DNA from: Oopsacas minuta
Taxonomy: Eukaryota; Animalia; Porifera
Direction: 5' to 3'
Length of the DNA: 64,000 nucleotides
Assembly (NCBI GenBank): GCA_024704765.1
Contig: JAKMXF010000222.1
Location: 372,001 to 436,000 of the forward strand
This document shows, one piece after another, positions 115 to 52,203 of this stretch. Made by a program: the position numbers and the translations under genes. The stretch's first letter is position 1, and the number at the start of each line of letters is the position of its first letter. The notes under the pieces are model-generated. The model was not told the origin of the DNA. It made no database searches and saw only the letters and a list, made by a program, of their open reading frames with translations.

Positions 115-3100
115 TCATACGAACTGACCATCAGTTGAAAGGAACTCATCAGGTTGTGCTTTCATCATATCTCCAGGATACATTTCATGATGCATGTATT
201 CATGTGGATACATTTCAGGTGCTTGTGCGAAGTTCCCAGGTATCATTGGCATGCTAGCGTGATGAATATCAACTGGAGGAGGGTAGGCGAGAGGCGCTTG
301 AAGGAGTAGACCGTCTAGAGGGAGGCTAGTCGTGTCGCCGCCTGCTTGAGGTGGAGGATTATAAGAGGGTAGTCCTGTAGAATCAGAACCCCCTCCGTAA
401 TACGGTGCTTGCTTATAGATCGGCGGATGCACGGATTTATTCGCTGGTAGACTTTCATAAGTTGGATCGAACTCTCCATCATCATCACTATCATCATCTC
501 TCTTCTCTTTAGTATAAGACAATGAGAATTCTCCTGCTCTCCGTATGTTATAGGTACGTGATTGGTAATGATGTATTATAAGATAAACTAAACAGAAAGC
601 TCCACCTAGTATCAGCACAATCAGAATTATAGCTGCTACGATAATCACAATCAACTGCCACAGCTCAAAGATACAGAAATACAAACCTTCACAATCCTTG
701 ACGTATTCTACCGTTACACATTCTGACTGAATCCCACAAGTCTCATTCAATCCTTCTGTATAGACATTACAACAATATAAACCCTCATTACCTGACGAAA
801 TAGTCTCTATGCTAAACGTATACTCGTCAACTACAGTCACACCATTTAGAGTGCTTGGTAGAGTACCAGATTGCATTGATACTTTCCTCATATATACCCA
901 TTCTGAACTAGGCACTGGCTCGCCCTCAGAACTACATGTTATCGTAGTATTAAAGTGATCAATTGAATTCAATGGACCAGATGGAGTCACTTCAACTATT
1001 GCACAACTATTCACAATCAGTGTGAATGAATTTGTTACCTGAGTTCCAGCGCTAGTAGCTGTGCAGGTGTATACCCTGCCTGATTGTTGTCTATTGCCTA
1101 CAACAGCTAATGTATTATTAGGGAATATAGTGAATACTGTTGTATTAGCGATTATTGATCCACCAGCTGTCGACCATGTAACAACAGGTTGAGGCTCTGC
1201 ATATGCTACACAATCTTGAAGGTACATTTCCTTCTCCAAAATCTTGACAACGTCTGAAGGGAACAAAGAATCAATCACAGGGTCACTTGGTATTCTAACT
1301 GTTGAAACTTGTGACTCGTCAGTACCCTTGAAATTCTCACTTAAACATTTATAACCACCGTTATCCCTTGCAGTAACAGAGGAGACCGTTAACATAGAAG
1401 TGCGAGAGGAATTGTCTACGTTTTGAGAGTTAACTATCGTATATTTCTCAGATTCGGTTATATTAAAGCTTTCAGTGGGGCTGGTGAACTCCCATTGTAT
1501 CTGAGGTAGTGGATCTCCTGTAACCGAACAGCTGATACTGAAGATATCATTTACATTGTTATTGCATCTATGAAATCTGGGGTTGGATGTTGTGAGAATG
1601 ATGGAGGAACTATAAAAGCAAAATTGCTGATAAATTATGAATTTGAAATATTTCTTTCCCCCAACTATCTCATGTTTTTTGTTATGCAATTATATTACCT
1701 GAAAATTACACAAATTCAGACACAGTAATTCCCGCCATAACCAAGACGGATATAACGAAGTGAATTATAGCATAGTATCCATGCTAGTATCACACGCTAG
1801 TATTTAGACACAACGCTTATATATATTCCAACAGGATGCCAAACTTCCATCCCGTTACGTCATGATAGAATCACACAAACCATGGATATATCTTATCTAT
1901 AACTTCTATGCCAGTTTCACACACTACTAAATTTAACTAAATTGCTAGGTATTTTGGATTAATGGGTAATATGAACAAATTTGTACATGTAGTCACGAAA
2001 AATAGCTATTTACTCGGGCCCATTAATTAATAAAGAGACCCCCAGAGAGGTAACTCAACTCACCAGCATCTCTTACAGTTATTCTTCCATTAGCCACAGC
2101 ACTAGCTTCAGAATTATCAGCTCTACAGGTGTAGTAACCTGTATCAGAATCTGTTAAGTCAGCTATTTCCAAGGTAGTAGTATTACCAGAAGTAGTGAGT
2201 GTGTATTTAGCACCATTTTCTAACAACACGCCATCTTTATACATCTCTATTGTAGGTACAGGTACACCAGATGTTTGGCAATAAATGGATATTGTTTGAA
2301 GTTCGTATTCAATTAATTCTCCTTCTATGCTTGATACTACCTCAGGAACCTGATAAATCGTAAGTGTCCTTGTGTCTTGGATATCTCCTGCGAGAATAGC
2401 TCGATATAAAGTGGGTGTATCTGTGGTTACAGTCACTGATAGAAGGTTTGAAGGGAATTGTTGGTTATCCACCACTGGAACAGGCAACCAATCTCCTTCT
2501 ATAAAATACTCCCAGGAACAAGAAGCTGCGTATGGTACACACTCCAAATGTAGTATATCTCCAACTGTACTGGTAATGTCAGTTGATGGAAAAACTAGTG
2601 GAGGAAGACTGAATATATTTTGACCTACAACACTCAGTGTATACTGAGCATTAGCCTGTATCCTATCAGTAGGATCACCATATCTGTTCTCAAGGAAGCA
2701 ACGATATTCAGCTCCATTAACTACATCAGAAGATAATAATAATAACGAATTAGATCCAGGTAGAATACTGGGATTAACAATAGGAATTCCATTCAGCTCC
2801 CATCCAATTACAGGAGTAGGTAATGAACCATTGAAGAAGTCACAGGGAAGATATGAATTTACGGTTCCCCTAACAGTGACAATCTGATCAGAAGTACTAG
2901 AATCTTTGAATTTAGCCCAGTATACAATAGCACGTGAGCTCAATATTTCCCCATCATTATCACTAGTTTGACAGTCCCAATAAACACCAGCTGCGGATCC
3001 ATCTACATCCACCATAGGAGAATTCTGTGTATGAGCTTGATTGGTAGTCGTGGTGCGTACAGCTACGTTATTACGTCTGTAGATTATCTGATCTCCTGTA

Positions 3101-3240
3101 GAATTGCATTGTATCACGAGTGGAATTCCTGTGTATGTGTAGTATACCGCATTAGGATGTTGAGTGAATTCCAAAGTTTGAGAAGACACGAATATCAAAT
3201 AACTGACGAGTGTGTAGAAATGGAAATATGTAAGCTTCAT
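115..3240 (-). CDS. Ig-superfamily type I receptor, copy A: signal peptide, 7 Ig-like domains, TM, Tyr/Pro-rich tail. Exons 2064-3240 and 115-1609; 1-nt deletion near 1559-1560 relative to copy B
   Basis: Hydrophobic N-terminus MKLTYFHFYTLVSYLIFVSS. Ig motifs include DTGYYTC, DNGGYKC and NEGLYCC. TM helix WQLIVIIVAAIILIVLILGGAFCLVYLII. Donor GCTG|GTGAGT at 2063 and acceptor TTTATAG|TTCCTCC at 1610 define a 454-nt phase-1 intron, the same length as in copy B. As written, the spliced frame stops at 1551-1553. Confidence 0.8.
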
Positions 3241-3243
3241 TTT
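641..3243. repeat. Left arm of ~2.6-kb inverted segmental duplication (partner 48321-50924)
   Basis: The reverse complement aligns with 48321-50924 from AAAATGAAGCTT to TGGCAGTTGAT(T/C)GTGATTAT, including the intron. Confidence 0.95.
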
Positions 3244-4587
3244 AGCCTCAGAATATACTGAAAATATTTTATATATTTTCTTACGAACAATGCACTGAAA
3301 TCTAATACAAAATAAAATAAATTATTGAATGAAATATGGGACTTGAGTATTTATATGACACATTCAATTTGTATACCTCTATTGTTATAGTTGTATGGTG
3401 TTATAAACCAAAGAGGAGAGAGAAGTAACCATATTTAATTGCGTCATTACAATGAACTATAAACTTATTAATCATTGTGTTGGCCACAAAATGAATTGCA
3501 AATACGCAAACTGGAAGTTAATTAGTAATTAAGTAACCATAGGGCAAAACGTATGGGAATCAGTTTACCTCTAAACACTACATTCTATAGAAAATTCACG
3601 TATTTTCTAAGTGGTAACTCTTTTATATTATTAAAGTATCTGCATACTTTATGTAAGAACCTCAAAGAAGCTATTCAATTTGACTTAAACTATGTGAGAT
3701 TGGGGGATGAGAATCACATAGCATGTGGGAGAGACATCACGGCTCCACAATGCATTCGAATTGCTTACATTATGTGTAGTACAATTACCAGACATCTGTT
3801 CTTACTTAGTTTAATTATGAGGGAAGATTGATAGTGAAGTGTGATTTCTTTGTTTGTATTTATAACAATGAAGTAAGTGGAAAGAATTGTATGATGTAAT
3901 GAATTTTAACAAGGGATTACTATTTTAGGTTTCAAGAGAGTGATGTTAGAAAGAAGTTGTGATTAATTACTTAACAGGATTCGTTAGACGTCATTTACAG
4001 TTTACAAATATTCAAGGACATACCTTGCCTTAATTAACAAAGTATTCAGCCACTGATAAAATTTCCATACAAATATAGTAACTAATTCTTGAGGGGCCAA
4101 TAGTAGGATGTCGCTTAACCAGAGAATTTTTAGTTAAAAAGTATAGCCGCTTCCTCCTCCAACGACTGTTTTCAATGATATTTGATGAATATAAAATTGA
4201 CCTAAAGTTGTTAGTGGAATTTAAAATTTTGTAAGAAATTTTCTTCTCAGAAACCCAAACATTTCAATTCATCATAGCCATAGATACTTTCACAAAATTG
4301 ATTATTCCAGAAAATTTTTTGTAGAATTCCCCACTTAAAGAGGTAATTGTGCCCGATTGAGGGAGGAGTTCGTATCTCTGAGGTTTGAGTATATTTCTGT
4401 TAAATTACCATTTTGCATACTTCAATAATACAAACTTTCTGTATATATACTAATGATAATGCTGAATAATTGCAACTCATGACACATTGTATACATAGTT
4501 AATAAATACGAAAATGCAATAAGTACACATGGCAAGTAAATCATATAGCGATTACTGACAAGTGACAGGGTTACAGCTGTTACACAT

Positions 4588-5127
<540 letters not shown>

Positions 5128-5474
5128 CTAACTTACTTAGCGGAAAGAATTATAGATATTGAAATTTGAAATTATATAACCATGATAAGCCGGTTTACGG
5201 CACAGTATTGCAATTCTACCAATTCTTTCACGAACTTTCCGCAAACGAAATAAAAGTTATTTTGAGTGATTATATAGGAAATTACAGAAGAGTGTATTCT
5301 CACAATTTAGCTCAAAAGTTCCAAATAGCATACACAAGATAAAGAAATCGTTCAACTATACATTTAGAAATATATCAAAAATGACAAATTACCAAAAACG
5401 AATAAGTCATAAATATATAATTACAGAATATTGGAAAGAAAGAATGTAACAGTAAATACGTACTGAGAATAAAT

Positions 5475-6836
5475 TCAATAATATCTGAGAGGATATTTAG
5501 AGTTAGCTAAAGAAACAATCATTCTACCATCTTTAGAGGAAGTTACTCCGGCTGTGAGTATCTTCTCATCTTCTTCTTCAAGAGGAAAAACAAGTTTATG
5601 AACCAATGTACCACCTAATGTTTGAATGTGAATAGAATGATCATATGTATTACATATAACTAATAGTCCATTTTTATCAATGTAGAATTGGAAAGAAAGG
5701 AATATCGCATAGTTCTCAGCTAGATTGAGTGCATCCTTCATTCCAAACTCAAAACACAAAGGAATATTCTTAACTAGATCTCCGCTATATGAGAAGAGAT
5801 ATAACCCAGCTGGTATAATAGAGTAAATCAGTATACCTTCATTTCTACAGAGAATGCTATAGTTAAGATATGTATATGTAGAAATAGATTTAATATATTC
5901 TAACTCTGAATTGTACACATGGATACCATCACCATCTCTAGAGATATAAACATCACCGTTGTGATGGTCAATACAAGAAAACTTACCCTCTTGAAACGTC
6001 TTTGTAAGTAATAATTCAAAACTTGTAAGATTGAATTGCTTTAGAGTATCAAATTTGTTTATGACAAAAATGAAATTATTCTCGCTATCTATACAGAAGT
6101 CTGTAAATTCTTCTCCAAAACAAGCAATGAGCTTACCATATTGTTGGAATACAAGACATCTTTTAGACATGACATCTAACACAAAAACGCGATCATTTTT
6201 TGTATCAATATGAATTCTTTCAAGGTATAGTTCATCATTTTTAGATTTGGCAGATTCTCTTGGTTTTGTGTTTGGCAGACGAAACAATTTCTTAAATGTA
6301 GATTCCAATGCTGTATGTTCAGGTGCAGGTAAGTCTTTCCTGAGCTTAGTCATAGATTTTAGAATATCATCTTTATCTATTGAGAGAATTGGTTCTAGAA
6401 TAGGTGTATAATCTTCATCAAGAATTATCAAATCAACTGATTAAATTAACTTTTTCATTTTATCTGAAAATTTATCTAAAATAATGTTAGGAGGTGGAAT
6501 TGGTATTTTCAACTTCTCAAGAGCATCATCATACCTACAAACTGATTCATCTCTGAGAATATTCACTTTATTAAACTTTACTCCTAAATCCATGGTTTGT
6601 TGTTTTATTCTCTCAATTTCTTGTATCTGTGCTAATCTAGCCATTTCCAGCGCTTCATATTCTATCCTCCTTTGCCTGAGTCTACTTATCATAAATAATC
6701 TTTTCTCTTGTAGTAGTTTCGCAATCAAATCAAACTGAGAATGTATTTCAAATTCTCTTTCTTCAAATACGTTAGAAACAGAAATTCCTGGAGTTGATTT
6801 GTTCTCTCCCTCACCCTCGGGATAGCAGGTAGCCAT
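5475..6836 (-). pseudogene. Coiled-coil + NHL/beta-propeller protein interrupted by one in-frame TAA (6441-6443)
   Basis: ORFs 6441-6836 and 5475-6431 are in the same frame: ...KMKKLI*SVDLIILDE... The N-terminal part is coiled-coil and the C-terminal part is a degenerate NHL-like propeller. Confidence 0.7.
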
Positions 6837-7608
6837 TATAGAATTCAGGAATTTAGGAATACGTATCTATTTATCTCAGCAAAAATAAATACATTATTAT
6901 AGTTACAGAAATTCTCGTTTTAGCGAAGTGCTCGGGCGCTGGTTTCATTTCGTTTGAGGCATTTCTTAAAAGTTCAGAAATCTATTATATAAATCGTCAC
7001 TAGTTTAGGGAGATGCCCGGATCTTGGAGGTCCAGATCTCAGAGTTTCGACTGTACGAAAATTGGACAAATACTCAAATTGTAATAATAAATGCATAGTC
7101 TAGGCTAGTAAATGAAAATGCATTTTGGCTGTCTTTGAGAAGCTGGAAACCCCCACAAGAGGCCGTATACCCCGGAGATACAGGTGTTATCCCCCGACTA
7201 TTATTAAGGACAAGCTGTTGTAACTTAATTGTGTATGTTACCTTCAAAGCCATAAACTAAGATGATTAGGCAGAATGCTAACTGTTGGTGATAACATATA
7301 TTGCAAGCATTTGGATGGTTTCTCACATTATAGTTTGTGGTGCAGATTCATATAATGGTTGAGTAAATCCATACAAAAATAATTACGAAACCATAATTTA
7401 TATCTTATAAAGTTGCTTATAATTATTCTAATTATAGATATTGCAAAGTGTCTAGAATGTTCTTAACCATTGTATTATTCGTCCAATACACATTCAACAT
7501 ATGTATGGGAATCCTTTATATAAATCTGCTACTATCTAATTATATTCAAACTGTTCTCTCAATTCAATTAGTTAATATATCTATCCTTCATCTCCATCAC
7601 CAATCATC

Positions 7609-9534
7609 ATGGGAAATAGACTACCAACAGCTGAACAGAGACGTCTACGGATACAAGAAATTGATGCATACATAGCTAGACAACCGTTAGAGCCTTTGAT
7701 AATTGATGGGAAGGTATTGAACCTGGACTGCTTGGATCCTGACTATGTACGTCCTGAAGACAATGGAGAAGCTGATAATTATTTTATAGCTACCAAATTC
7801 TTAGAAAATGTAATCACAAGATTTCGAGAGCATAACTTCACTGATTATCAAACACTATCTAAAATTTTGAACGAGGCTTTCGATATTATCCCTAAAAATT
7901 CACTAAAAACAAATGGTGACGTCATAGAAACACTCCCTCCTGTATTGACCAGAGATATTTCTAATATTACCAGATTATTTAGTGATCTAATTGGTGAAAC
8001 AAGAAACGTTAGGTATACTTCAAGACTCGAATTAGAGTATGGAAGACAAATTTCTGTGGGTAAAGGAGGTTATGGTGTGGTAGTGAGAGCTATAAATAAG
8101 CTGGATAATTGTGAATATGCGATTAAAAAGATTAATCTGAGGGGGAGTCCACAGAAACATCTGAGAGAAGTGCAGTTGTTAGCCAAGTTGATTCATGAAA
8201 ATGTAAATAGATACTATTGTGCTTGGCTAGATTACGAAATTGAAAAAAGAGAGGATGCTGGAAATAGTACTAGCGAAATCGAAAGTACAGCTGGTGAGAC
8301 CGAATCTGCCTCTTCAGTGTTTATAAGGTCTAATCTGGAACATGAAGATGATTTCAACGACACAAGACTAACTAGATGCCTAAATAGGAACTCTAATAAA
8401 TATTATGACGATTCTATCTGGGATTATGGTGATGAACGACTTTATTCTGGACAAGAAGATGAAAACTCTGGTAAAACAGATTCGTTACTTTTCAGCGATA
8501 CCAACATAATGTATTCTAATGACTCAAATGGGTCCAGAGAAATATATTCAGAAATACGACGAAAAGTAGATTCTAGCTCTGATCCTGATGTCATTCTTCT
8601 TCCCCAAGAAAGGCCAGGTTTTAGAAAAGAAATTTCACTTGTTCGGCGACACGTACCAACCCGTCAACAACCTGAAACTCGTATTGTATCTCAACCATGG
8701 AATCATCGTATACTGACGCGAAATTTTTCATTCCCCTTCACAAACTTACAATATAATACCATGAGTATCTCAAACCGGCTGCCACTGACGTCACAAGATT
8801 TACACCCCCAACCACTAATTCCTGCTCCTCCTCTCCAGCCTGTATTACACCCTATCATATGTATACAGCTTGAACTCTGTGAAACAAATTTACAAGAATG
8901 GCTTAGAACACGAAATGAAGTCTCGACAGAAATAAGCAAACTAACCGACGATGATATCTCAATTGTAGACGATTACGTCATCCAGTTTTATAAAGGTATA
9001 AAGTATCTACACTCACAGAATTGTGTACACAGAGATATCAAACCGACCAATATATTATTAACGGGTAATAGAAAATTATTAAAAATTTGTGATTTCGGAC
9101 TTTCAAAGGAAATTGTCAACAATAGTGAAAGTTTTGAGAGATCTTCTACGTCATCAAATAGTAGTTCTGTGCATACAACCAAGCTTGGCTCACGACTGTA
9201 TACCTCTCCAGAACAGCTGATCTCTAATCACTACTCTTTTAAGACTGATATTTTCAGTTCTGCCCTAGTTTTCCTGGAGCTATTTTACCCCTTCACAACA
9301 GACAATGAAAAGTGTAATATCCTCAGTGGAGTTAGAGAGAGCAAGATTCCAACAGAATTTCTAGAAACCTTTCCATTTCAGTCCTCTCTCATTTTAGAAA
9401 TGGTGAATTTGACTTGGGATGATCGGCCGGATGCAGCCATGGTATTGAATAGATTATTAAAAAACAGTGATTATGCAGCTAAAGAAATTTTACTACTGAA
9501 AAAACGAATTGCTGAATTGGAAGCGCAACAATGA
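7609..9534 (+). CDS. eIF2-alpha kinase family protein (HRI/PKR/PERK-like) with long kinase insert
   Basis: Motifs GKGGYGVV, YAIKKI, HENVNRYYCAW, a long acidic/Ser insert, IQLELC, HRDIKPTN, DFGLSK, YTSPEQ and KTDIFS..ELFYPF. There is no TM or signal peptide, which fits HRI best. Confidence 0.85.
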   Translation: MGNRLPTAEQRRLRIQEIDAYIARQPLEPLIIDGKVLNLDCLDPDYVRPEDNGEADNYFIATKFLENVITRFREHNFTDYQTLSKILNEAFDIIPKNSLKTNGDVIETLPPVLTRDISNITRLFSDLIGETRNVRYTSRLELEYGRQISVGKGGYGVVVRAINKLDNCEYAIKKINLRGSPQKHLREVQLLAKLIHENVNRYYCAWLDYEIEKREDAGNSTSEIESTAGETESASSVFIRSNLEHEDDFNDTRLTRCLNRNSNKYYDDSIWDYGDERLYSGQEDENSGKTDSLLFSDTNIMYSNDSNGSREIYSEIRRKVDSSSDPDVILLPQERPGFRKEISLVRRHVPTRQQPETRIVSQPWNHRILTRNFSFPFTNLQYNTMSISNRLPLTSQDLHPQPLIPAPPLQPVLHPIICIQLELCETNLQEWLRTRNEVSTEISKLTDDDISIVDDYVIQFYKGIKYLHSQNCVHRDIKPTNILLTGNRKLLKICDFGLSKEIVNNSESFERSSTSSNSSSVHTTKLGSRLYTSPEQLISNHYSFKTDIFSSALVFLELFYPFTTDNEKCNILSGVRESKIPTEFLETFPFQSSLILEMVNLTWDDRPDAAMVLNRLLKNSDYAAKEILLLKKRIAELEAQQ

Positions 9535-10396
9535 TATTGAACATTACAGTAAGAATTTAACAATTTTGTATTAAATATAACAAATTTGACCAACAGTGTT
9601 AACCTAATACAATTCATGTATTTCCTGGAGTATTCAACTTTATTTATAATTTTCATTAATTATTTTTTGGAAGGTTTGTGCGAGTTTAGGAAGGATAGTA
9701 CTGTACTGAATTCATTATTAACGATTCATCATGCGTAGTATCAATTCGCCAGGGCTGTCTATCTGTCACTCCTGCCATTTCTAACGATGAAATAGAATTT
9801 CTCACTATGTATCATATCTATATTATTAAATCTCAATTGTTGTTTGTTTGTCCGTTACCAAGGAAAGGATTTACGGTATGCAATTTTGAAATTGCCGCAT
9901 AACCATGTATTTATCGTGTTTATCAAAGAAGTAAATAGAAATCAATAAAACTTCACTGAAGATGCTGAATCTGATTTTCACACTTTTGGATTAATCATAT
10001 GTAAATTTATTGTTGTTTTTTATGAATATAAAGTAAACAAATCATCCAAATCTCAAAATATACGTACAGGCTTTCTCTAAACAGCTACCCAGGAGTAACA
10101 AACTACGCTGAATCCGAATTATGGCAGGATCATGTTTGCCACGGTAAGATTATAGGTTTATGTACTCGAGGGCCGTAAGCCCGAGCGAACACGAAGTGTT
10201 CACAACCGCGTAGAGTGAGCAAGCGAAGCGAGCTCGTATTTAATGTAGAGTATTATTTTCTATGTAATAAGTAATCAGAAATGTATAACGCTGGAATTAG
10301 AAGTTCCCTGAGGCTCACTTAATGGAAATCTATTTTTTCATTAATATTATCTAATAATTAAGTAAAGTCACTAAAAATAATCTAACAAAACACCCT

Positions 10397-11380
10397 CTAA
10401 GGTAGTGACTTGGGAGTGTCTTCATCTACAAATGAATAATTTCCGAGTTCGTAGTAATGTGGGTCACGAAACGTGATATTATTGTTCAACATCTTACCTT
10501 TTATACTTGAGAATATATGGGGAGGTATAGGATCTTTCAGAATTTGTTCCAAAAACTCAAATTCCTCTAAACCCTTCAATCCTACAAGAGTTGTAGGAAC
10601 ACAGGGCTCTTCTGTAGGAAACTGAAGTGCAGCCTTTTCAATAGGATACTTGTACTCCGCTTCAACTGTTGAAATTAACTGTTTCAATTCGAATAGTTTT
10701 TCTTTTGTCATGTAATGCCAAGAGGGTGGAGAAGATTTCGTGGTTAAGAGGCCCAGAACAAGAGGAGAAGCGTTTATCATTCCAATACCTTTCTCCTTTA
10801 AGAGTGGAAATAGCTTAGAAAGACTGTCATCTAGTAGGGTGTAGTGAGGATACGAAATCACAACATCAAGTTGAATAGGACTCTTCTCAATTATCAACTT
10901 AAGCACTTGCAATGGTTCACATGAAAATCCTATATAGCGAGCTTTCCCGGATTCTTTAACCTGTTGTAATGCAGGTAGCGCCTCCTGTAATACAATATCT
11001 GGATCTACATACTCAACGTCATGCAGTATGAGAATATCTAAGTAGTCTACTCCCAACCGTGCCAGACTCTCGTTTACGCTCTCTTTAATCCGTTTGGCGG
11101 AATAATCAAATTCCTTCAGACCATATCTCCCAACTTTAGATGACAAATAGTACTTATCTCTATCTATCCCCTGTAAACATTTTCCTAATACAGTCTCTGA
11201 TTTAAGAATTCCATAGAATGGAGATGTATCGAATAGATATTTGTCCTTTTTGATAATTTCGTGACATAATTTCTGAGCTGTTTCGAATTTAACTTCTCCG
11301 TACACATTTCCTAGTGTTGAGGTACCTATTGAAAACGGGCCAAGGAAAATATCTGTTCTACCTAACTGTCTCTTTTCCAT
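10397..11380 (-). CDS. Aldo-keto reductase, L-galactose/D-arabinose dehydrogenase-like
   Basis: MEKRQLGRT N-terminus, FDTSPFYG, SSKVGRY and DYLDILILHD supply the AKR Asp/Tyr/Lys/His tetrad. The first ATG is at 11380; the ORF track starts at a TTG. Confidence 0.85.
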   Translation of the reverse strand: MEKRQLGRTDIFLGPFSIGTSTLGNVYGEVKFETAQKLCHEIIKKDKYLFDTSPFYGILKSETVLGKCLQGIDRDKYYLSSKVGRYGLKEFDYSAKRIKESVNESLARLGVDYLDILILHDVEYVDPDIVLQEALPALQQVKESGKARYIGFSCEPLQVLKLIIEKSPIQLDVVISYPHYTLLDDSLSKLFPLLKEKGIGMINASPLVLGLLTTKSSPPSWHYMTKEKLFELKQLISTVEAEYKYPIEKAALQFPTEEPCVPTTLVGLKGLEEFEFLEQILKDPIPPHIFSSIKGKMLNNNITFRDPHYYELGNYSFVDEDTPKSLP

Positions 11381-11657
11381 GAAATTATTCTGAGACAAGA
11401 GTAATACGTACTTTCAAATTAATATTCGGATAAGACATACTTCAGTACTAATTTTCGTTCCCGAGAGTACGTCTTATCCGAGTTCTACTGTATTTATCAA
11501 AATGTAAATACCGTACGCTGGGAAAATATCCAAGCCTTTATATGTAACAACTACTCGAATAGCGTGTTAAAAACTAGGGACAACATAGTGGTGATACATT
11601 TACTTCGAAATAATGTCGGGTATCAGTTGCTGGGGGACATAATTAATCCTATAGCAC

Positions 11658-11826
11658 CAGGGCTGTATCAACTCATTTTTTTCTACCAACTCATTCATTT
11701 TTATTGCGCCAACCCATTCATTTGGATGTAACTAACTCATTCAACTCATTCAATTCATCTAGCTTATGTAACCAACTCATTCCAACTCATTCAACTCATT
11801 CAATAAAATGAGTTGATACAGCCCTG
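11658..11826. mobile_element. hAT-type MITE, 169 bp
   Basis: Perfect 22-bp TIR CAGGGCTGTATCAACTCATTTT. The 8-bp TSD is TATAGCAC/TATAGTAC (7/8). Internal tandem AACTCATT motifs. Confidence 0.85.
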
Positions 11827-12062
11827 TATAGTACTGTTGTCAATACAATCTTTCAGCAACCAATACACATGAAATAATTAACAATAGTAATTGCAATATA
11901 ATTCTAGTCTTCTTTCTCAAAACAAGCCTCACAAATACTCGACCATACACAGATATGTATAACAAAATTGAATAAAATCTTATGAAATGAAACACAATGT
12001 AGAATCTAGATGTCTAACAGTGAAAATACAAAAATTGAATAGAAGAGAGTAAAATACGAATA

Positions 12063-14630: not shown

Positions 14631-14942
14631 GTACGAGAGCTTGACTAGTCAATAATATCCATCATGGATGCTCAATAATAATGAATACCTGCTCAATTGA
14701 ATGTGATAAATATATTTCATCGTGATTTCGTCTAATACATAGCAAACACATAAATTCCTGGGATTATATTTGCTAATTTCCGGGAGTTTTAGCTACATAA
14801 ATAGTAATATCAGGTTAATAATATTTAGAGAAAAAGGACAAAATATTTCCAACATTTCATTGGATTTCTTATAAACCCGGAATTATCCAGGAATTCCGGT
14901 AGGGTGTCAAGTATGTGATGTATCCCATACTATGTATCAATA

Positions 14943-15099
14943 CAGAGGAGTCTCCCAAAACGAATACTCCGAGAAGCGGACAATCCTCCTGGAACGGAAT
15001 GAATTAGCAATCATATATGTAATACTTTAGCAGTCTCCGGGAAGCGGACAACTCCCCAAGAGATGTCCCCAACGTGTCCGTAATTCGGTGACTCTACTG
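14943..15099. mobile_element. Tc1/pogo-type MITE
   Basis: TA|CAGAGGAGTCTCC ... GGTGACTCTACTG|TA: imperfect TIR with TA on both sides. Confidence 0.6.
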
Positions 15100-15246
15100 T
15101 AGTAGGCATAGAACTCAAGAATTTAGTTTGAATTCATGCAAATCAACCCTGTGAATATTGAAAGTGATTTATAGATTGAATTTTTTGATTCTACTACGGA
15201 AATATATTATCGAACTTCTAATAACAATAATAATAATAATCTAATT

Positions 15247-17211: not shown

Positions 17212-18262
17212 CGATTTCTATATGACTGAATTGATTTCTAATTGTGTAATACTATACTAGTCATGCATTAGTGTTGTCATAACAACTCAAGATATATGTA
17301 TGTTTGTGGTTGTAGTATATTAGTAAAATGCGATTTGAATGATACTTTACTTCGAATTTGTTTGGCGAAATTCAATTGATAGTGTAAGTGAATGTAGATT
17401 TTTTGTATTTATAGTAAAACTGCACAGCCAGTTTCAGGTTAATTGATTGCATCATTGTGCCGAGATCAAAATTTATACCTACTGTGCACGGAATATACGA
17501 AGATCGAAGATGCATGGCCGTTATGCATGTGCGGCGGATCTTCATTCAATATCCGAATCAAGAAATCTGCAATTGATAACATGTATATGCGAATTTCTTG
17601 ATTCAGAAGTAATGTTAAATTATTAATTTGAATTTCAGTAGAAACTTGTATACATGTCGTTGCTGAATTATATTTAATATATAATGTTGACATATGAAAG
17701 TATACGTACTGACTGATCTTTACAATTGTGAGAAGAAGATTCAATAACTTGGTGCCACAATAAGTATTGGAATAGTGAAAATTATTACTTCATTAAATCA
17801 AAATATTATTAGATTACATTCTATTAAGAAATCTATAAAATAACTCAGTCTTAGAAGACTAAGTTCCTACTATATCAAAAGAAAAACGATAAAAATACTA
17901 AAAATGGAAAATAAGACGGTAAAAGAGATATAATAAATACTAAGTAGAAAGATATGGGAGTTATTTTATGATGTATCTGGGTTGTACAAGAGATTTGTTC
18001 GTATTAGCATCTCCGTCTGTATTATACTCATTCCTCATTGCTATTACATCTGTAGAAGAGAACTTTTTCGTATCACCTATACGATAAACAAAACTTAAGA
18101 GAATGCCTGTACAAACTGAAAATTCGGATTTATACATGTTGAACTTCGTTTGTGCGAACACGGTTAATATAAATTTCCGGATGAGGCGACAAATATTTAC
18201 AGAGATCAGTTTCCTACAATAGTTATTCAATTGGCATTACTCTGTTTAATACGAACTCCGGA

Positions 18263-42685: not shown

Positions 42686-45176
42686 TCAAAATATGTTGCT
42701 ATAGTAATTTGTCCTGAAATATTATGGGGTATGGATCTGGGAAATTGGTCCCGAAAATTTGGTGAGAGGCATACATTAAAATTATATGTCTAGAGTGCCG
42801 TGCTCCCCATTCTTATGGCACTAGCGTTTTAGGGCTCCTTGGATCTCACAAAACTCTAGCGGTATAGGTAGGACATTAGTATCGTGATCTATTTTTGACG
42901 ATTGAAGGATGATCACTGATCATTTAATGAACAGTGATTGATAATCGAATGGAAGATTGCACTCATTCTTTCCTGAAAAATTGTATATCAAAATGTATGT
43001 AGTATTAATTTTCATGGCAATCAGGCTGGTAGTGGTCGCGTGGACGGACCGGTGGAGGCAAGTAATAGAGCATCTCCCTATAGGAAGTGCTTATAAATTT
43101 CAGAAAAGTGAGAGGAAAAATGATTGTGAACGTGATAGCGATACTTTTTAGGGAAAGAATTGGGATCACGAATTCCAATCTTATTTAACGAACGAGTATG
43201 ATAATTAATTTAGTGATCTACTAATGGCCTAGATAGAGATCAGTCCAGTGATTAGGCCCTATTCGAAGGGTCACCAGTATAAAACATATATGCTCAAGCC
43301 CATAGTTCTTATAGAGTTCTTGCTAGTTGACCCAGATTCTTTCCTTGTATTCGTTATAACGCGCTCTGTTTTCTCAGAGTAACTCTCTTGGACATTGATT
43401 CAGTCTGTTGAATTGGTTTATGGCTATGATCATACGTTCTCTTACACTTAGAGTATCTTCCTTGTGTGTTGTTGAGATTTACTGGATTGGTCATCAGCTT
43501 CTTCAGATGTTGTCTGAAAGCCAAACTGAACCAGAGGATCTATTTTCGAGATCACATAAATATCTCGGCAAGACCCAGGAGCAAGCCTGTCGCTAAAAAC
43601 ATGAAACTCCTGAGAAAAAATACAAGATTAAGTATTCGTTTGTAGGTATACTGTTTACAAATAAGTAATTTGTCTAGGGCGAGCTAATATCTAAGACGTG
43701 ACGTGATGTGACGGTCCCAGAATATGCAGATGCCTACTATTGTATACGAGAAGTGACGTTATGGTAGCCGCCTAAGTCCTAAATACATAAACCCAAGTAG
43801 TATAACAATATACTTTATGTATTCTGTGTTAGTCCTACTTCCAGGGATCATAAAGCTAGTAAGTGAAATATTCTGAGGCTTGTGTAAGTGCATGAGGGTG
43901 GGGTGGCCTGATAACCAATACAGTAAAACGTTTGGGCTGACGAGTCATCTATGGCGGATTATAGCTTGTGTGAAAATTGAAATAGGTCTATTTCATTGGA
44001 TTGGTTTCCAATATGCTAGCGATATATATACTGACCTCAAGGACCCATAAATGCTTGAGTTTTAGCTCCCAAGAAATGCGATCACACCGGAAGCAAGCAA
44101 AACACTCTGGAGTCCAGAAGCTCCAAAAAAATAGGCTGCAGCGATTTATCCATAAACATATAGTATACACTTTGGGAGGTTATTATAGCGTCACGTACCG
44201 AAATTAGGTACGCCTTGTCCATGTATTCCTGTTCCTGCATAGCTAGAAATTAAGTGCACAGAAACTCGGAGACGGGGATCCAAAGGCATTAGCGATTTCG
44301 CCCCTCTATCCCTAATCGGTATTCAAGGGTCTCTAAAACGAGCTAACACCGAGGGTAAAAAACGGTACAACTATAGTATTGTACCGGAAGGTGATTCCCT
44401 TTTAATCGACACTAGGGGTTGTTTTGAAGTCATAGAACTCGTCGAATAATGAACAGGGAACTTTAGAACACTAAAATCGGACTAAATTTGACAAAGTTAT
44501 AATCATTTTACTATATAAGCCAAAGTCTAATGGGGATATATTGCAATAACTGAATGTAGCCAATTTATACGCTATATGTTTGTTTGTATTCACTTTGCTT
44601 ATGCATACTACTCTCACACGTTCAGCATTTCTATGAGTTTGTATTTTATGTTTAACAGGTGTAAAATCTTATGGATTACTGTTTGCATTATAACAAATCC
44701 GAGTACGCGTCCAGTAATATTTGTCCGAAAAATGAAGTGGGGGACGCTCATAAACCTATTAATAGGCCTGGGCATTCCGCATGGGCCTCCAGCACACTCC
44801 TGATACTATACTACGTCCATGACTAATCACTATAGTCAAGGGAAGTACGCATATCTTAAGCACGCACTCTTTCAAAATTAACCCTTAGATATGCAACATA
44901 TTTATATTTACGCAACAACTACATTTATCTAGGTTTTAGTTTAAGGCTAATAAATTGGGTCTATATTCTTAGCAACATATTTTGCTACATAAAAAACAAC
45001 TTAATAAATAGTGAATTAACCCTTGTGAAAGTGTTCAGATTATTGAGTGACTGGATGTACTGTAGTGGTTACAATTCGGATTATAAGTGGGACCTAGTAC
45101 ACTATGACTTTATTGATGTATATATTACCAACATTCTAAGAAAATATTTATTATGATGAAGTTTACAGATAATGAT

Positions 45177-46103
45177 TTATATTACTGGATATAAATCTCT
45201 AATTCCTCTTAGAATAAATCCAAAAATATTTTTCTTATGTCTCCTCCGCCAACAAGCCTCTATGAGATGGGTCTCAAGTAATTCAGGATTTGTTGTCTGT
45301 CCTTTTTTCTGCCTCTTTTTTACACCTCCCCAACTCCCTTCTATCTTCTGGGTGTGTACATGAGTCACTGGGTCTACGAAAATCTCGGAATGGTTAACTG
45401 TGTAATGGGTATATCCGGAGTGACTTAATATATTGTAGGAAGCCCACTCATCAGAATAAATTATTGTTTGTGGATGAATGAACCTTTGGATAATTGGCAG
45501 AAGAGTGGCTGTTGAGCGATCAGGTACAGTAACCATAATTATATCATCTGTATCCCTCTCAACCATCCCAAATACCCACTGGCCAGTTAACAGTCTGCCT
45601 CTATTATATTTTCGTTTGCCGAATTTGGATTCGTCTATCTCAACGATCTTGCCAGGACCTCCAATGGGTTGAGGGTTCATTAATATTTCTTCCAAACAAA
45701 TATCCCTCAAATAATTCTTCCAATCAACCACTGTGTTCGGACTCCATCCCAAATGCTTCTCCAAAAATGCATGCGATTGCAAGTCCTCACTCCAATAGTA
45801 CAGGAACTTGAACATCAATGGGAGTGGAATTTTGGATGGTGTGAAGAAGGACCCATGGCGGATCGAACACTCTCGTCTACATGGACTACATCTCCATTCA
45901 TAGCCATCCTGAAAGTGAGAAGAATGTGTTTCATACATTTCTACTCCACAACAACACCGCATTCGACGCGCTAATAAGCCATACGTTCTTAACCAGTTTA
46001 CGACATTATCACAACACTGTGCAAGAATAATAATGTCATCAATAATCAAATCCTGCGGGATTTCACTGAAGACAGTGGGCTCAAGTATTGGCTGAAAATC
46101 CAT
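45177..46103 (-). CDS. Merlin/ISXO2-like DDE transposase
   Basis: Zn-ribbon (CCCG...WRCSPC), VEIDESKFGKRKYNRGR, WVFGMVER, IYSDEWASY and VNHSEIFVDP..HTQKIEGSW; uninterrupted ORF, first ATG at 46103. Confidence 0.93.
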   Translation of the reverse strand: MDFQPILEPTVFSEIPQDLIIDDIIILAQCCDNVVNWLRTYGLLARRMRCCCGVEMYETHSSHFQDGYEWRCSPCRRECSIRHGSFFTPSKIPLPLMFKFLYYWSEDLQSHAFLEKHLGWSPNTVVDWKNYLRDICLEEILMNPQPIGGPGKIVEIDESKFGKRKYNRGRLLTGQWVFGMVERDTDDIIMVTVPDRSTATLLPIIQRFIHPQTIIYSDEWASYNILSHSGYTHYTVNHSEIFVDPVTHVHTQKIEGSWGGVKKRQKKGQTTNPELLETHLIEACWRRRHKKNIFGFILRGIRDLYPVI

Positions 46104-46156
46104 TGGTTGTAATAACAATGCGTAGAATATTATATGTGCAACAATTACTTGTTATA

Positions 46157-46557
46157 CACGTTTTTTTTTTATAAGGAACCCTAATTCAAACTTCAGGCTG
46201 AAGTTCCTTATTTTTTTTGCCAATTTCAGCCTCAAAGTTCCTTATCGGTTCCTTATTTTCTCGGCTCGAAATATTGCTTAGAAAATGGGTGGTTTATTGG
46301 AAAGATCCAATATTTTAACAGTAGGCTTGATGAGTTTAAAGTAGTATTTGAAGATGATTCAATTGATTATATATCAAAGGAAGATATAGACGATGTTGAA
46401 ATATTCTTGATAAATTAATAAATGATGCTATGATAGGTATATTATTTATGGGTTTTATAATCTCAGGCTGGGCAGTTCCTTAAGAGTTCCTTAATTTTTT
46501 GCCAATTCTCAGCCTGGAGTTCCTTATAAAGGTGTTCCTTATAAAAAAAACAACGTG
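46157..46557. mobile_element. Tc1/pogo-type MITE nested in the Merlin element
   Basis: TA|CACGTTTTTTTTTTATAAGGAAC ... GTTCCTTATAAAAAAAACAACGTG|TA, with repeated AGTTCCTTA motifs. Confidence 0.8.
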
Positions 46558-47316
46558 TAGTTAGGTATTTAGAATATTAGTCTTCTTATGTATTCTAAAA
46601 GTGGCTTCATTAATCATAAACGTAGTTTAGTCCGTTTCATGACCTCTCATTTGTAAAACATCATAGGAAATAACATAAAATACAAACTCATAGAAATGCT
46701 GAACGTATGAGAGTATGCATAAGCAAAGTGAATACAAACAAACATATAGCGTATAAATTGGCTACATTCAGTTATTGCAATATATCCCCATAGACTTTGG
46801 CTTATATAGTAAAATGATTATAACTTTGTCAAATTTAGTCCGATTTTAGTGTTCTAAAGTTCCCTGTTCATTATTCGACGAGTTCTATGACTTCAAAACA
46901 ACCCCTAGTGTCGATTAAAAGGGAATCACCTTCCGGTACAATACTATAGTTGTACCAAAAAATACCACACAAGAAGCAAGCAGAAACACTCTGGAACATC
47001 TTGAGAATCCATACAGTCTGAATCAACAGCTGGAGGCGTCTTACCCATTACAAACATATAGTGATACACTTTTGGATAAGTATTTGAGCTGTTAATACGT
47101 CACGTCACGTCCCAGAAATCCGGGACCCAAACTTTCTTTGCTGATTATCATTCAGTACTAACAAGGAAGAATAAGAAGGGTTTACATTTAGAATTGAATG
47201 GGTTAATTTCCTAATATTTACTTTGAAGGTGTTGCGAAGGCTCAGAGTCAGAAATTTGGAATGATGTCCATGGTTCAATTCTTCAGAATTCAAGAATATT
47301 CTGAAACAAAAACAAA

Positions 47317-47389: not shown

Positions 47390-47476
47390 GATAATTTTTA
47401 AAGATTATGTAATTAAATTTTAATTCATATTAGTCTCGCACAGTCAGAGCTTATACACTCACTTATACTGACTTAT

Positions 47477-48320: not shown

Positions 48321-50924
48321 AAAATGAAGCTTACATATTTCCATTTCTACACACTCGTCAGTTATTTGATATTCGTGTCTTCTCAAACTTTGGAATTCAC
48401 TCAACATCCTAATGCGGTATACTACACATACACAGGAATTCCACTCGTGATACAATGCAATTCTACAGGAGATCAGATAATCTACAGACGTAATAACGTA
48501 GGTGTAGGCACCACGACTACCAATCAAGCTCATACACAGAATTCTCCTATGGAGGATGTAGATGGATCCGCAGCTGGTGTTTATTGGGACTGTGAAACTA
48601 GTGATAATGATGGGAAAATATTGAGCTCACGTGCTATTGTATACTGGGCTAAATTCAAAGATTCTAGTACTTCTAGGCAGCAGATTACTGTCACTGTTAG
48701 GGGAACCGTAAGTTCATATCTTCCCTGTGACTTCTTCAATGGTTCATTACCTACTCCTGTAATTGGATGGGAGCTGAATGGAATTCCTATTGTTAATCCC
48801 AGTATTCTACCTGGATCTAATTCGTTATTATTATTATCTACTGAGGTAGTTGAAGGAACATATAGTTGCTTCCTTGAGAACAGATATGGTGATCCTAATG
48901 GTAGGATACAGGCTAATGCTCAGTATACACTGAGTGTTGTAGGTCAAAATATATTCAGTCTTCCTCCACTAGTTTTTCCATCAACTGACATTACCAGTAC
49001 AGTTGGAGATATACTACATTTGGAGTGTGTACCATACGCAGTTTCTTGTTCCTGGGAGTATTTTATAGAAGGAGATTGGTTGCCTGTTCCAGTGGTGAAT
49101 AACCAACAATTCCCTTCAAACCTTCTATCAGTGACTGTAACCACAGATACACCCACTTTATATCGAGCTATTCTCGGAAGAGTTATCCAAGACACAAGGA
49201 CACTTACGATTTATCAGGTTCCTGAGGTAGTATCAAGCATAGAAGGAGAATTAATTGAATACGAACGTCAAACAATATCCATTTATTGCCAAACATCTGG
49301 TGTACCTGTACCTACAATAGAGATGTATAAAGATGGCGTGTTGTTAGAAAATGGTGCTAAATACACACTTACTACTTCTGGTAATACTACTACCTTGGAA
49401 ATAGCTGACTTAACAGATTCTGATACAGGTTACTACACCTGTAGAGCTGATAATTCTGAAGCTAGTGCTGTGGCTAATGGAAGAATAACTGTAAGAGTTG
49501 CTGGTGAGTTGAGTTACCTCTCTGGGGGTCTCTTTATTATTTGATGGGCCCGAGTAAATAGCCATTTTTCGTGACTACGTGTACAAATTTGTTCATATTA
49601 CCCATTAATCCAAAATACCTAGCAATTTAGTTAAATTTAGTAGTGTGTGAAACTGGCATAGAAGTCATAGATAAGATATATCCATGGTTTGTGTGATTCT
49701 ATCATGACCTAACGGGATGGAAGTTTGGCATCCTGTTAGAATATATATAAGCGTTGTGTCTAAATACTAGCGTGTGATACTAGCATGGATACTATGCTAT
49801 AATTCACTTCGTTATATCCGTCTTGGTTATGGCGGGAATTACTGTGTCTGAATTTGTGTAATTTTTAGGTAATATAACTGCGTAACAACAAACATGAGAT
49901 AGTTGGGGGAAAGAATTATTTCAAATTCATAATTTATCAGCAATTTTGCTTTTATAGTTCCTCCATCATTCTCACAACATCCAACCCCAGATTTCATAGA
50001 TGCAATAAACAATGTAAATGATATCTTCAGTATCAGCTGTTCGGCTACAGGAGATCCACTGCCTCAGATACAATGGGAGTTCACCAGCTCCACTGGAATC
50101 TTTATTATAACCGAATCTACGAAATATACGATAGTTGACTCTCGAAACGTAGACAATTCCTCTCGCACTTCTATGTTAACGGTCTCCTCTGTTACTGCAA
50201 GGGATAACGGTGGTTATAAATGTTTAAGTGAGAATTTCAAGGGTGCTGAGAAGTCACAAGTTTCAACGGTTAAAATACCAAGTGACCCTGTGATTGATTC
50301 TTTGTTCCCTTCAGACGTTGTCAAGATTTTGGAGAAGGAAATGTACCTTCAAGATTGTGTAGCATATGCAGAGCCTCAACCTGTTGTTACATGGTCGACA
50401 GCTGGATCAATGATCGCTAATACAACAGTATTCACTATATTCCCTAATAATACATTAGCTGTTGTAGGCAATAGACAACAATCAGGCAGGGTATACACCT
50501 GCACAGCTACTAGCGCTGGAACTCAGGTAACAAATTCATTCACACTGATTGTGAATAGTTGCGCAATAGTTGAAGTGACTCCATCTGGTCCATTGAATTC
50601 AATTGATCACTTTAATACTACGATAACATGTAGTTCTGAGGGCGAGCCAGTGCCTAGTTCAGAATGGGTATATATGAGGAGAGTATCAATGCAATCTGGT
50701 ACTCTACCAAGCACTCTAAATGGTGTGACTGTAGTTGACGAGTATACGTTTAGCATAGAGACTATTTCGTCAGGTAATGAGGGTTTATATTGTTGTAATG
50801 TCTATACAGAAGGATTGAATGAGACTTGTGGGATTCAGTCAGAATGTGTAACGGTAGAATACGTCAAGGATTGTGAAGGTTTGTATTTCTGTATCTTTGA
50901 GCTGTGGCAGTTGATCGTGATTAT
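48321..50924. repeat. Right arm of ~2.6-kb inverted segmental duplication (partner 641-3243)
   Basis: See the left arm; the introns differ by about a dozen substitutions in 454 nt. Confidence 0.95.
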
Positions 50925-52203
50925 TTTTATCGTGATAGCTGTATTAATGACCATTGCAGCTGTATTAATCATCCTCTGCATTTGGAAGCTTCGGAGGAAA
51001 GTGGAAACCTTAGAACTACCGGGAATTAATCAAATCTCAACTGAACTGAATACTGCCTTTGGTTATCGCCCAGGACTAGTCGATAGTCTTGCTCACAATC
51101 CTGAATTGACAGAATCAATGGGTGTAAAGTCAAAGGAGTATGTTGCTCTACCATCATATCCTGAATATATGACAGTAGACGAGACATCATTGACAACCCT
51201 CGACACCGATGTTCACCCCAAAGAAAGAGGCTATGAAAATCTTTCTAATATACCACGTGTTATTATTCCATACGAACAAGTAACTGAAACAGAGCAAAAT
51301 AGTTATACCGAAATGAAGGGAGTACAACCCTATGAGAAATACACACCAATGAGTTGTAAAAAGGAAGACAAGACATTAATAGCAAAGTTCATGCCTATAA
51401 AAGACTTCCCTGCTAGCTATGAACAGTATGTAGCATCTGGAATAGGAGAAGATTCATTATTTTGGGTGGAATTTCAAAAGCTAAAAGTGGAAACTATGAA
51501 AAATGATGAGTTAGAAAGTGACGATGCATCGAAAGCAGAAAATTTGCAGAAAAATCCAATCAAAAACATTCTACCATTTGATGAAAACAGAGTTGTATTA
51601 GATTCTCCACACTTTAACTGTAACTACATAAATGCTAGCTGGCTTGACAATTCTCAATTTATTGCTACCATCAATCCAACTCAAGAGACACATCTAGATT
51701 TTTTGCAAATGATTTTTCAAACAGAAGCTAATATGGTGATAATGCTGACTACGAGGAAGGAGAAAGCTAAGATACTCAGTGGAATATCTAATCGTATTTG
51801 TTACTGGCCTAAGAAGGATAAACCTATTAATTGTGAACCATATGTTTTAACTTTGATCAATTCTACTGAAACGAATGCATTTGTGAAACAGGAAATATCT
51901 TTGAAGAATACTTTAACAGGAAAGGAGCACTCGTTTACTCAGTGTATATCTCCAATATGGAATGAAGATGGTACTGTGCTTGAAATGGCTTTGGCTGTTG
52001 CACTTCTGAGTAAGATTATGAAACAGAAACAAGACTCAAATAATGTTCCTATAATAATACACTGTGAAGATGGTATCTCTAAGACTGGCATCATAATGAC
52101 AGTGTTGAATTCAATTAGAGAACTTAACATAAGGAAGTCTATTAACATATTTAATGCTGTTAATAACTTGCGTAGACAGAGAATTGGCATGGTTCCTACC
52201 TTG
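48324..52203 (+). CDS. Receptor-type Ig/PTP protein, copy B: signal peptide, 7 Ig-like domains, TM, Tyr-rich juxtamembrane segment, single divergent PTP domain. Exons 48324-49503 and 49958-52203; 3' end unresolved
   Basis: A phase-1, 454-nt intron joins both ORFs in frame (…VAVPPSFSQHPTPDF…), giving at least 1142 aa. PTP motifs NILPFDENRVVL, YINAS, FIATINP, YWP and IHCEDGISKTG; donor TTG|GTAAGT at 52204. Confidence 0.88.

Follow-up and report, generated by a model that had tools for sequence, protein, structure and literature searches.

The glass sponge Oopsacas minuta (Porifera) carries, on contig JAKMXF010000222.1 of assembly GCA_024704765.1, two genes for putative membrane receptors, A and B, which have a nearly identical ectodomain of seven immunoglobulin (Ig) domains and unrelated cytoplasmic tails. 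Both were found in a stretch of 64,000 nucleotides (positions 372,001 to 436,000 of the forward strand), which is referred to here as the window and to whose numbering all coordinates apply. On balance, we favour the reading that A and B constitute a chimeric pair of the paired-receptor kind, whose ectodomains are kept alike by gene conversion and are joined to different tails. The shared block occurs as two inverted arms:

641-3243 (-): arm A, the shared block from 3 nt 5' of the ATG to the middle of the transmembrane (TM) helix of gene A (repeat search, alignment, approximately twofold contig depth).
48321-50924 (+): arm B, the same block, inverted, in gene B (repeat search, alignment, loose contig ends at 3243 and 641).

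These inverted copies had been described in an earlier note, made by a model from the letters of the window, and were recovered by the repeat search as collinear pieces extending over both arms with 96-99% identity. Global alignment of arm A with arm B revealed 57 substitutions and 13 gap columns in 4 indels (6, 3, 3 and 1 nt), i.e. an identity of about 97.8%. Both arms open with AAA-ATG, just where the note had placed the start of homology (start codons at 3240 (-) in gene A and 48324 (+) in gene B). The last shared residues are ...FELWQLIVII, at 641 in A and 50924 in B, so that the abrupt end in mid-exon and mid-TM, with no intron at this point, was likewise recovered; an ATTAT microhomology is present at the TM junction. 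Beyond the arms, no similarity was detected in comparison with shuffled controls (upstream flanks z 0.6, downstream flanks z 1.2, tail proteins z -0.8), and therefore an older and larger duplication is not directly visible. The upstream value also agrees with the statement that the promoters are not shared, and the two genes do point outward (A on the minus, B on the plus strand). One description had to be amended: the introns, given as about 97% identical, do have this identity (97.4%, with 12 of 454 positions differing), but there is only one 454-nt intron per arm.

The presence of two copies was examined in Logan contigs of two DNA runs (X1 and X3), of an RNA run from another adult (X4) and of a close relative (X5). 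All four arm/flank junctions were found in independent short-read DNA contigs: the A tail and the A promoter flank are each joined to the arm, while the B TM segment and the B promoter flank appear as loose contig ends at 641 and 3243, in DNA as well as in RNA. The depth of the unique flanks was 52 and 62 in X3 and 71 in both cases in X1, and that of the arm was 100 (X3) and 137 (X1), which corresponds to approximately 1.9 times the A-tail flank and to 1.6 (X3) to 1.9 times the A 5' flank. The junction contigs, taken together with the roughly doubled arm depth, argue for a duplication and not for a collapse or a haplotype artefact. Run X4 has the appearance of RNA, with exon depths in the thousands, an intron depth of 29 and the spliced joint 1609->2064. 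Depth over the A tail region (1-620) was 4,800-12,700, and the B-type TM loose end was found together with A-type and B-type letters at many diagnostic sites. The check for both transcripts that the note had proposed thus has a positive outcome, as the A tail, the B junction and the predicted splice are all present in the RNA contigs of one adult.

Seven Ig domains had been counted in the ectodomain, and this number was supported by Pfam (I-set/Ig_3), in which Ig4-7 are clear and Ig2 is weak, and by an AlphaFold2 (AF2) model of exon 1 (predicted local distance difference test score, pLDDT, of 66), which contains four beta-sandwich domains. Over its whole length this model aligns, in Foldseek, to four-Ig fragments of Sidekick, contactin, DCC and hemolin (E ~1e-19). 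Seven may therefore be taken as a fair count. The ratio of non-synonymous to synonymous divergence (dN/dS) of the ectodomain between species is 0.37-0.41, which is high for a receptor, and by this measure the ectodomain evolves quickly. Gene A is composed of the following elements:

2064-3240 (-): exon 1, signal peptide and Ig1-4, phase-1 donor (Pfam, AF2, Foldseek, NCBI match P0159).
1610-2063 (-): intron, 454 nt, GT..AG ends (spliced joint 1609->2064 in RNA run X4).
115-1609 (-): exon 2, Ig5-7, TM and a 150-aa Tyr/Pro-rich tail, stop codon at 115-117 (open reading frame (ORF), Pfam).
118-640 (-): A-specific TM half and cytoplasmic tail (motifs DDDSDDD, YESL, PPIY and LPSY; C-terminus ...DGQFV).
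1551-1561 (-): site of a 1-nt deletion in the reference copy A, with the resulting TAA at 1553-1551 (alignment to B, contigs).

The Tyr/Pro-rich tail attributed to copy A is real and comprises 150 aa after the TM helix, including YESL, PPIY and LPSY. It matches no Pfam family and has no usable neighbour in the structural atlas, and it appears to be disordered and lineage-specific. Its acidic cluster and its YxxL, PPxY and LPxY motifs suggest docking of SH2/WW-type or sorting partners. The same two-exon gene was found in other glass sponges (P0002, P0003, L001, L006, L008, L010 and copy 3 of L004), where a CxxLYFCxFELW(Q/H)LIVII motif runs into an A-like TM helix. In these genes the tail is about 85% identical to that of A and the ectodomain only 40-56%. 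Three hallmarks define the family, namely the division into exons for Ig1-4 and for Ig5-7-TM-tail, the CxxLYFCxFELW juxtamembrane motif and the tail end ...DGQFV; gene A has all three, and gene B shares sequence with the family only up to WQLIVII. The gene at L008, in the sister species, is the syntenic orthologue of A, with the order mtHsp70, TRP channel, aldo-keto reductase, MORN and receptor in the same relative orientations and with an upstream flank homologous to that of A (z 29). Judged by this gene order, A is at the ancestral syntenic locus and the A-type combination is old. Two other loci were considered and set aside. L001 was rejected as an orthologue of A, as its neighbours differ from those in the window. 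L002 (1-10216 of an ENA contig) was rejected as a real locus, as it strings together direct and inverted fragments, all 100% identical, of a single A-type gene and is in all likelihood an artefact of chimerism or amplification; the ORF sequence alone was used from it.

The reference copy of gene A contains a lesion that had gone unnoticed in the earlier note. At ~1559-1561 copy A reads ATAAC where copy B reads ATAAAC, and given the shared phase-1 splice this 1-nt deletion puts the reference A out of frame, with a TAA at 1553-1551. The NCBI protein annotated as 'Hemicentin-1 [Oopsacas minuta]' (P0159, 411 aa) terminates exactly at this TAA, and the TM helix and the conserved tail are consequently left out of the public annotation of gene A. 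The 481 codons 3' of the frameshift are open, conserved across species and transcribed. The extra base is present in the DNA contigs X1 and X3 and in the relative X5, and RNA run X4 contains two in-frame versions of the site, ATA-AAC and ATC-AAC, both encoding Ile-Asn. The O. minuta assembly was built by merging Illumina and PacBio continuous long reads (CLR) of different adults and was polished with Pilon (PMC10280926). The deletion is either an assembly or polishing error within a 97% repeat or a segregating null allele, and truncation of the 411-aa annotation by a 1-nt assembly error is probable.

A further observation concerns the 5' end of the gene A transcript. At 3301-3303 (-) of the window, ~60 nt upstream of the ATG of A, the match of one X4 RNA contig stops at a good 3' splice acceptor (ttattttattttgtattag|a), and the same contig carries 11 unmatched letters (in mRNA sense, AAAAAACTTAC), which occur nowhere in the 64-kb window. 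This could be a trans-spliced leader; a leader of ~37 nt has been reported for the glass sponge Aphrocallistes vastus (PMC10282587).

Gene B has the following structure, in which the second intron and the last exon, both absent from the earlier note, are predicted from sequence:

48324-49503 (+): exon 1, Ig1-4 (ORF, Pfam, AF2, Foldseek).
49504-49957 (+): intron 1, 454 nt (alignment; B-type intron contig in X4).
49958-52203 (+): exon 2, Ig5-7, chimeric TM, Tyr-rich segment and most of a protein tyrosine phosphatase (PTP) domain (ORF, Pfam).
50925-51540 (+): B-specific TM half and juxtamembrane segment (K-PTP family homology from residue 2-3 after the junction).
51541-52203 (+): D2-like PTP domain (PF00102 positions 1-221 of 234; HCEDGISKTG (C-X5-K), WNEDG, KNPI, MVPTL).
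52204-53331 (+): predicted intron 2, 1,128 nt, phase 0 (GTAAGT donor at 52204, TTTAG acceptor at 53331).
53332-53385 (+): predicted last exon, 18 codons (ACYTTCYSLLNEYCSIHL), followed by the stop codon at 53386-53388; it completes the PTP domain.

The C-terminus ACYTTCYSLLNEYCSIHL is nearly the same in the Oopsacas paralogues P0012 and P0020. The Tyr-rich segment and the PTP domain described for copy B were both confirmed, the latter by a Pfam match to PF00102 with E 2.5e-41 and 142 bits (cut-off 20.9). The juxtamembrane segment is ~180 aa long (~200 aa from the junction) and contains YVAL, LPSY, YMTV, YENL, IPYEQV, YTEM and YTPM. Matches of the PTP domain in the PDB are receptor PTPs (RPTPs) with E-values down to 1e-43, with the D2 (membrane-distal) domains of RPTP alpha and RPTP epsilon as the best. 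In its P-loop (HCEDGISKTG) the Cys is kept and Lys stands in place of Arg, WNEDG aligns with WPD/WPE and has Glu at the position of the WPD Asp, KNPI replaces KNRY, and MVPTL-ACY replaces the Q-loop MVQTxxQY, with loss of the Q-loop Gln. Since substitutions affect the Arg needed for catalysis as well as the Asp of WPD and the Gln of the Q-loop, gene B is unlikely to encode a conventional phosphatase. As these substitutions are conserved throughout the related proteins P0009-P0022, the domain is under constraint, and it is probably a pseudophosphatase or a phosphotyrosine-related scaffold rather than an enzyme.

These relatives, collected in an exhaustive HMMER search, align with the B tail over the whole segment between residue 2-3 past the junction and the end of the match in the PTP domain (46-70% identity) and carry other ectodomains, composed of small Ig-like or FN3 domains. 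Three of them are O. minuta genes annotated as RyPTPR4a or RPTP-epsilon-like, and the closest Oopsacas paralogues are only 60-70% identical to the B tail. The B tail family is thus separate from the A family, which makes gene B a chimera with its join inside the TM helix; by this sequence homology, the outer half of the helix is from A and the inner half from the PTP receptor family. A word-indexed search of other glass-sponge assemblies with B exon 2 detected no B-type chimera (A-like Ig5-7 with PTP), and the genes that it returned were of A type (P0002 and P0003). Gene B was also considered as a derivative of the short-tail partner gene described below (L005/L009), and this was rejected, as the 5' flank and the tail are non-homologous (z <= 0.8).

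Gene conversion in this receptor family was most evident in the sister species (assembly ERZ25069837), in which, on separate contigs, the A-type gene at L008 is accompanied by a gene at L005 with a different TM helix, a very short tail and flanks unrelated to those of L008. Over a stretch that opens at approximately the ATG, includes the intron and closes shortly before the TM helix, the two genes are 92-99% identical (96% overall). L009, from another organism, is the orthologue of L005 (promoter flank z 140, TM/tail z 32), yet its ectodomain is only ~82% identical to that of L005. Synonymous divergence (dS) is 0.073 between the paralogues L005 and L008, against 0.36-0.40 for L005/L009 and L008/L009, and with homologous flanks this means that flanks and ectodomain have different histories. 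As read from these alignments, the sister-species pair has undergone concerted evolution by gene conversion, in a tract bounded by the ATG and the TM helix. Paralogues of one species group together in the Ig5-7 tree, at 99-100% support. A third species contains, at L004 (ERZ20067936 ptg000080l, 5696-17676), three tandem mosaic copies. Copy 1 has a promoter in common with copy 2 and a tail in common with copy 3, this A-type tail being fused to the end of a copy-2-type tail, and copy 2 has an unusually long hydrophobic TM stretch and a short tail ending in SNYANL, which resembles an immunoreceptor tyrosine-based inhibitory motif (ITIM).

For Oopsacas A and B themselves the evidence of conversion is indirect. 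The 5' limit of the arms at the ATG recurs in the pairs in which conversion was found. In a contig of the relative X5, the arm gives way to a B-type 5' flank at the very position (3243) that bounds it in O. minuta, and this contig differs from the arm by 5-8%. At the sites diagnostic for the reference A and B it is A-like at 15 and B-like at 12, and this mixture, with the 5-8% distance, makes X5 an outgroup to the two arms, which differ from each other by only 2.2%. Individuals also differ in which segments are identical between the copies. In X1 and X3 a single contig of ~2x depth covers 650-1835 as an A/B mosaic (B at 1678, A at 1685, A at 1689, B at 1701), and two contigs of 1x depth cover 2636-2760. 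In X4 both letters are present at 1431-1523 and A letters only at 884-1317. The proposal that conversion keeps such pairs alike therefore stands for the sister species (by the dS values above) and stands indirectly (by the X5 junction and the differences between individuals) for Oopsacas, where gene conversion between A and B is probable.

A further feature overlooked in the earlier note is that the A and B ectodomain proteins are ~94-95% identical and that their differences are mostly amino-acid-changing. There are 38.8 non-synonymous and 5.2 synonymous differences (dN 0.024, dS 0.011, ratio 2.3, Fisher p 0.07), so that the ectodomains are not simply kept matched. Nearly all coding differences are within Ig1-5, and the intron has diverged by 2.6%. 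Divergence is uneven along the arms, with 4 substitutions in the TM-adjacent 654 nt against ~3% elsewhere (Poisson 0.0014), and this pattern adds to the indirect evidence of conversion between A and B. The excess of dN over dS is marginal, and positive selection between A and B is possible on these counts.

In the explanation favoured here, gene A is the ancestral family member, in which the seven Ig domains and the TM helix are followed by a putative docking tail that is strongly conserved and appears disordered. Gene B is the chimera, in which an inverted copy of the A block between the ATG and mid-TM, intron included, is joined in frame to the tail of a different receptor family, which supplied the distal TM half, the Tyr-rich juxtamembrane segment and the single D2-like PTP domain of gene B. 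Non-reciprocal exchange would since have kept the ectodomains ~98% alike, with the limits of homology (ATG and mid-TM) as tract limits; most of the differences that persist alter amino acids of the distal Ig domains. A ligand common to both receptors would then be read by two different cytoplasmic outputs.

Several points weigh against this explanation. With no B-type chimera found elsewhere, the chimera may be young, and a divergence of 2% then needs no conversion. Intron divergence (2.6%) equals dN, and the uneven divergence and the dN/dS of 2.3 could stem from selection alone. An A-type copy was not seen in X5, and Logan contigs drop variants; the phasing of A and B copies and expression levels are beyond them. 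The reference A allele is frameshifted, the inserted base is present in about two thirds and missing from about one third of the X4 RNA depth at the deletion site, and a null allele of A may be real. Finally, to judge from the motifs considered below, vertebrate-style activating and inhibitory features are absent. The first two points lend some weight to a single recent event, in which a repair or replication error copied the A block in inverted orientation into a K-PTP gene 45 kb away, followed by ~2% divergence, partly under positive or relaxed selection. The ATTAT microhomology at the TM junction and the intron being as diverged as the non-synonymous sites fit this history, and template-switch duplications typically give inverted orientation. 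It nevertheless leaves the 5' breakpoint 3 nt before the ATG to chance; in the conversion pair of the sister species, too, homology begins close to the ATG and ends at the TM helix; X5 has the same B-type 5' junction and yet is 5-8% away from both arms, which are 2.2% apart; and the segments that are identical between the copies vary among individuals. For these reasons a single event with no continuing conversion is regarded as rather unlikely.

Gene A might alternatively be a pseudogene or encode a secreted decoy of four Ig domains, with the deletion real and fixed; B would then be the only working membrane receptor, and there would be no functional pair. This reading is improbable. It would account for the deletion in the reference, for the 411-aa NCBI product and for the incomplete share of the inserted base in the RNA. 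Against it stand the extra base in X1, X3 and X5, the two in-frame versions in RNA, the intact downstream frame of 481 codons with its highly conserved tail and exon-level RNA depth, and the origin of the assembly from mixed adults, including PacBio CLR reads, with Pilon polishing across a 97% repeat (PMC10280926). An assembly artefact, with two haplotypes or a mis-join mistaken for two arms and a single true ectodomain, is highly improbable and was rejected. The hybrid assembly does derive from several individuals, and the 45-kb spacing and the orientation are beyond the contig evidence. However, the four arm/flank junctions are found in independent runs, the arm depth is 1.6-1.9 times that of flanks which are themselves similar in depth, the A flank is syntenic single-copy DNA, the 64-kb window contains no Ns, and the two tails belong to independent families, each conserved in its own right. 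The chimeric pair maintained by gene conversion continues to be the reading that we prefer.

The earlier note had compared A and B with the paired immunoreceptors of vertebrates. Homogenization by gene conversion has been described there for Siglec-5/14 (PMC4042635), Siglec-11/16 (PMC5701461) and CEACAM pairs (PMC2832619). Like these, A and B are two linked genes with near-identical Ig ectodomains and unrelated TM and cytoplasmic parts, the similarity is confined to the ectodomain block, introns included, and conversion was found, here in the sister species; a possible null allele of A would recall SIGLEC14-null and SIGLEC16P. The part of the analogy that concerns matched ectodomains and unrelated tails therefore holds, and the part that concerns an activating/inhibitory grammar is not supported. 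A motif scan revealed no charged residue in the A TM helix after the initial ELW and no immunoreceptor tyrosine-based activation motif (ITAM) in either tail, and among the seven YxxPhi motifs of B a single one is ITIM-like (IPYEQV); A has none outside the membrane. Unlike the vertebrate pairs, A and B lack a charged TM residue, a DAP12/ITAM partner and an ITIM tail of the classical type; B ends in a pseudo-PTP and A in a long PPxY/YxxL docking tail; the switch point is inside the TM helix and inside an exon; and the two genes, in inverted orientation, are separated by 45 kb that contain housekeeping genes. Since the host belongs to the Porifera, any resemblance is convergent.

Other receptors provide partial parallels. 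With the type IIa RPTPs (LAR/PTPsigma/PTPdelta) gene B shares an Ig ectodomain, a single TM helix and a PF00102 domain, and with the D2 domains of RPTP alpha and epsilon the WPE-type substitution and the loss of the KNRY Tyr. Unlike RPTPs, it has a single domain without an active D1, carries C-X5-K in place of C-X5-R and lacks both the Q-loop Gln and FN3 repeats, and its ectodomain is taken from an unrelated receptor family. Together with the RyPTPR4a and RPTP-epsilon-like proteins of O. minuta it has HCxDG(I/A)(S/T)KTG, WN(E/Q)D and MVPTL, and its TM half, juxtamembrane segment and PTP domain reach 50-70% identity with members of this family, but in place of that family's own ectodomain and membrane-proximal domain it carries the seven Ig domains and the first TM half of A. 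The Alr proteins of Hydractinia (PMC9546547) are likewise members of the Ig superfamily in a non-bilaterian, with variable tails, fast-evolving ectodomains and sequence exchange among paralogues. Unlike A and B, which are known from sequence, Alr proteins have other domain types, ITAM/ITIM-like tails and genetic proof of a function in allorecognition.

The DNA that separates the two arms was annotated as follows:

3244-48320 (no strand): interval between the arms, 45 kb, with ~20 intron-poor, mostly housekeeping genes (ORF annotation).

Among these genes are mtHsp70, TOP3, Vps26, a SETX-like helicase, a TRP channel and an aldo-keto reductase (AKR). The part of the interval adjacent to A is syntenic with the sister species (L008) and in the same relative orientation, and the reference orientation is therefore ancestral there. 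Nearly every interval gene consists of one long ORF (e.g. the SETX-like helicase of 1,763 aa, TOP3 of 885 aa and mtHsp70 of 654 aa), and these single-ORF genes fit the compact O. minuta genome, for which 1.59 introns per gene have been reported. A DNA transposon (44364-46956) is located 1.4 kb upstream of gene B, with an ORF for a 313-aa ISXO2/IS1595-like (Merlin-type) transposase (45177-46118 (-)) and 171-nt inverted repeats of 99% identity (44364-44534 and 46786-46956). Related transposase pieces are found near L005 in the sister species. Just downstream of B there are C-type-lectin-like and Ig-like ORFs (56988-57732 (-) and 62225-62581 (+)), and this region looks like part of a lectin/Ig receptor cluster that was the source of the B tail family. 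A second inverted repeat (256 nt, 98%; 57606-57861 and 63745-64000) runs off the end of the window and is possibly part of another inverted duplicate. The window also contains three genes with coiled-coil and NHL repeats (TRIM-like, no RING seen) at 5475-6836, 23553-24539 and 54983-56275, and similar genes adjoin Ig receptor members at L001 (2100-3413), L004 (18829-20136) and L009 (5454-6725). This adjacency may be a coincidence within an expanded family or may reflect a functional link.

Paired receptors whose similarity is preserved by gene conversion count as a hallmark of innate immunity in vertebrates, where pathogen or decoy arms races are seen as having shaped them. In the library of papers that was searched, none combines paired receptors, gene conversion and sponges, and the Ig receptor family of A is not discussed in the O. 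minuta genome paper. For the locus described here, the paired-receptor reading is supported as a genomic architecture, while the analogy with activating and inhibitory signalling is not supported by the motifs. A further-reaching claim, which we consider doubtful at present, is that glass sponges independently evolved a true paired-receptor system, in which a seven-Ig module would be placed on alternative chassis (a conserved docking tail, a short-tail form with a long TM helix, an ITIM-like tail or a pseudophosphatase) and kept in register by conversion, with interval flips and a null allele of A as possible additions. If true, the paired logic of innate-immune or allorecognition receptors would have arisen in one of the earliest-branching animal lineages, and the inverted arms would let the 45-kb interval flip and exchange promoters.

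The locus itself documents the birth of a gene by an in-frame junction within a TM helix, with no intron involved, and the gene so formed exposes a conserved C-X5-K PTP-like domain. The genomic logic of paired receptors recurs in at least three species of glass sponge, combined with differing alternative tails, and offers a tractable example of how receptor modules have come to be shared, by convergence, in an early-branching animal that is syncytial. The receptors are candidate molecules for self/non-self or symbiont recognition in sponges.

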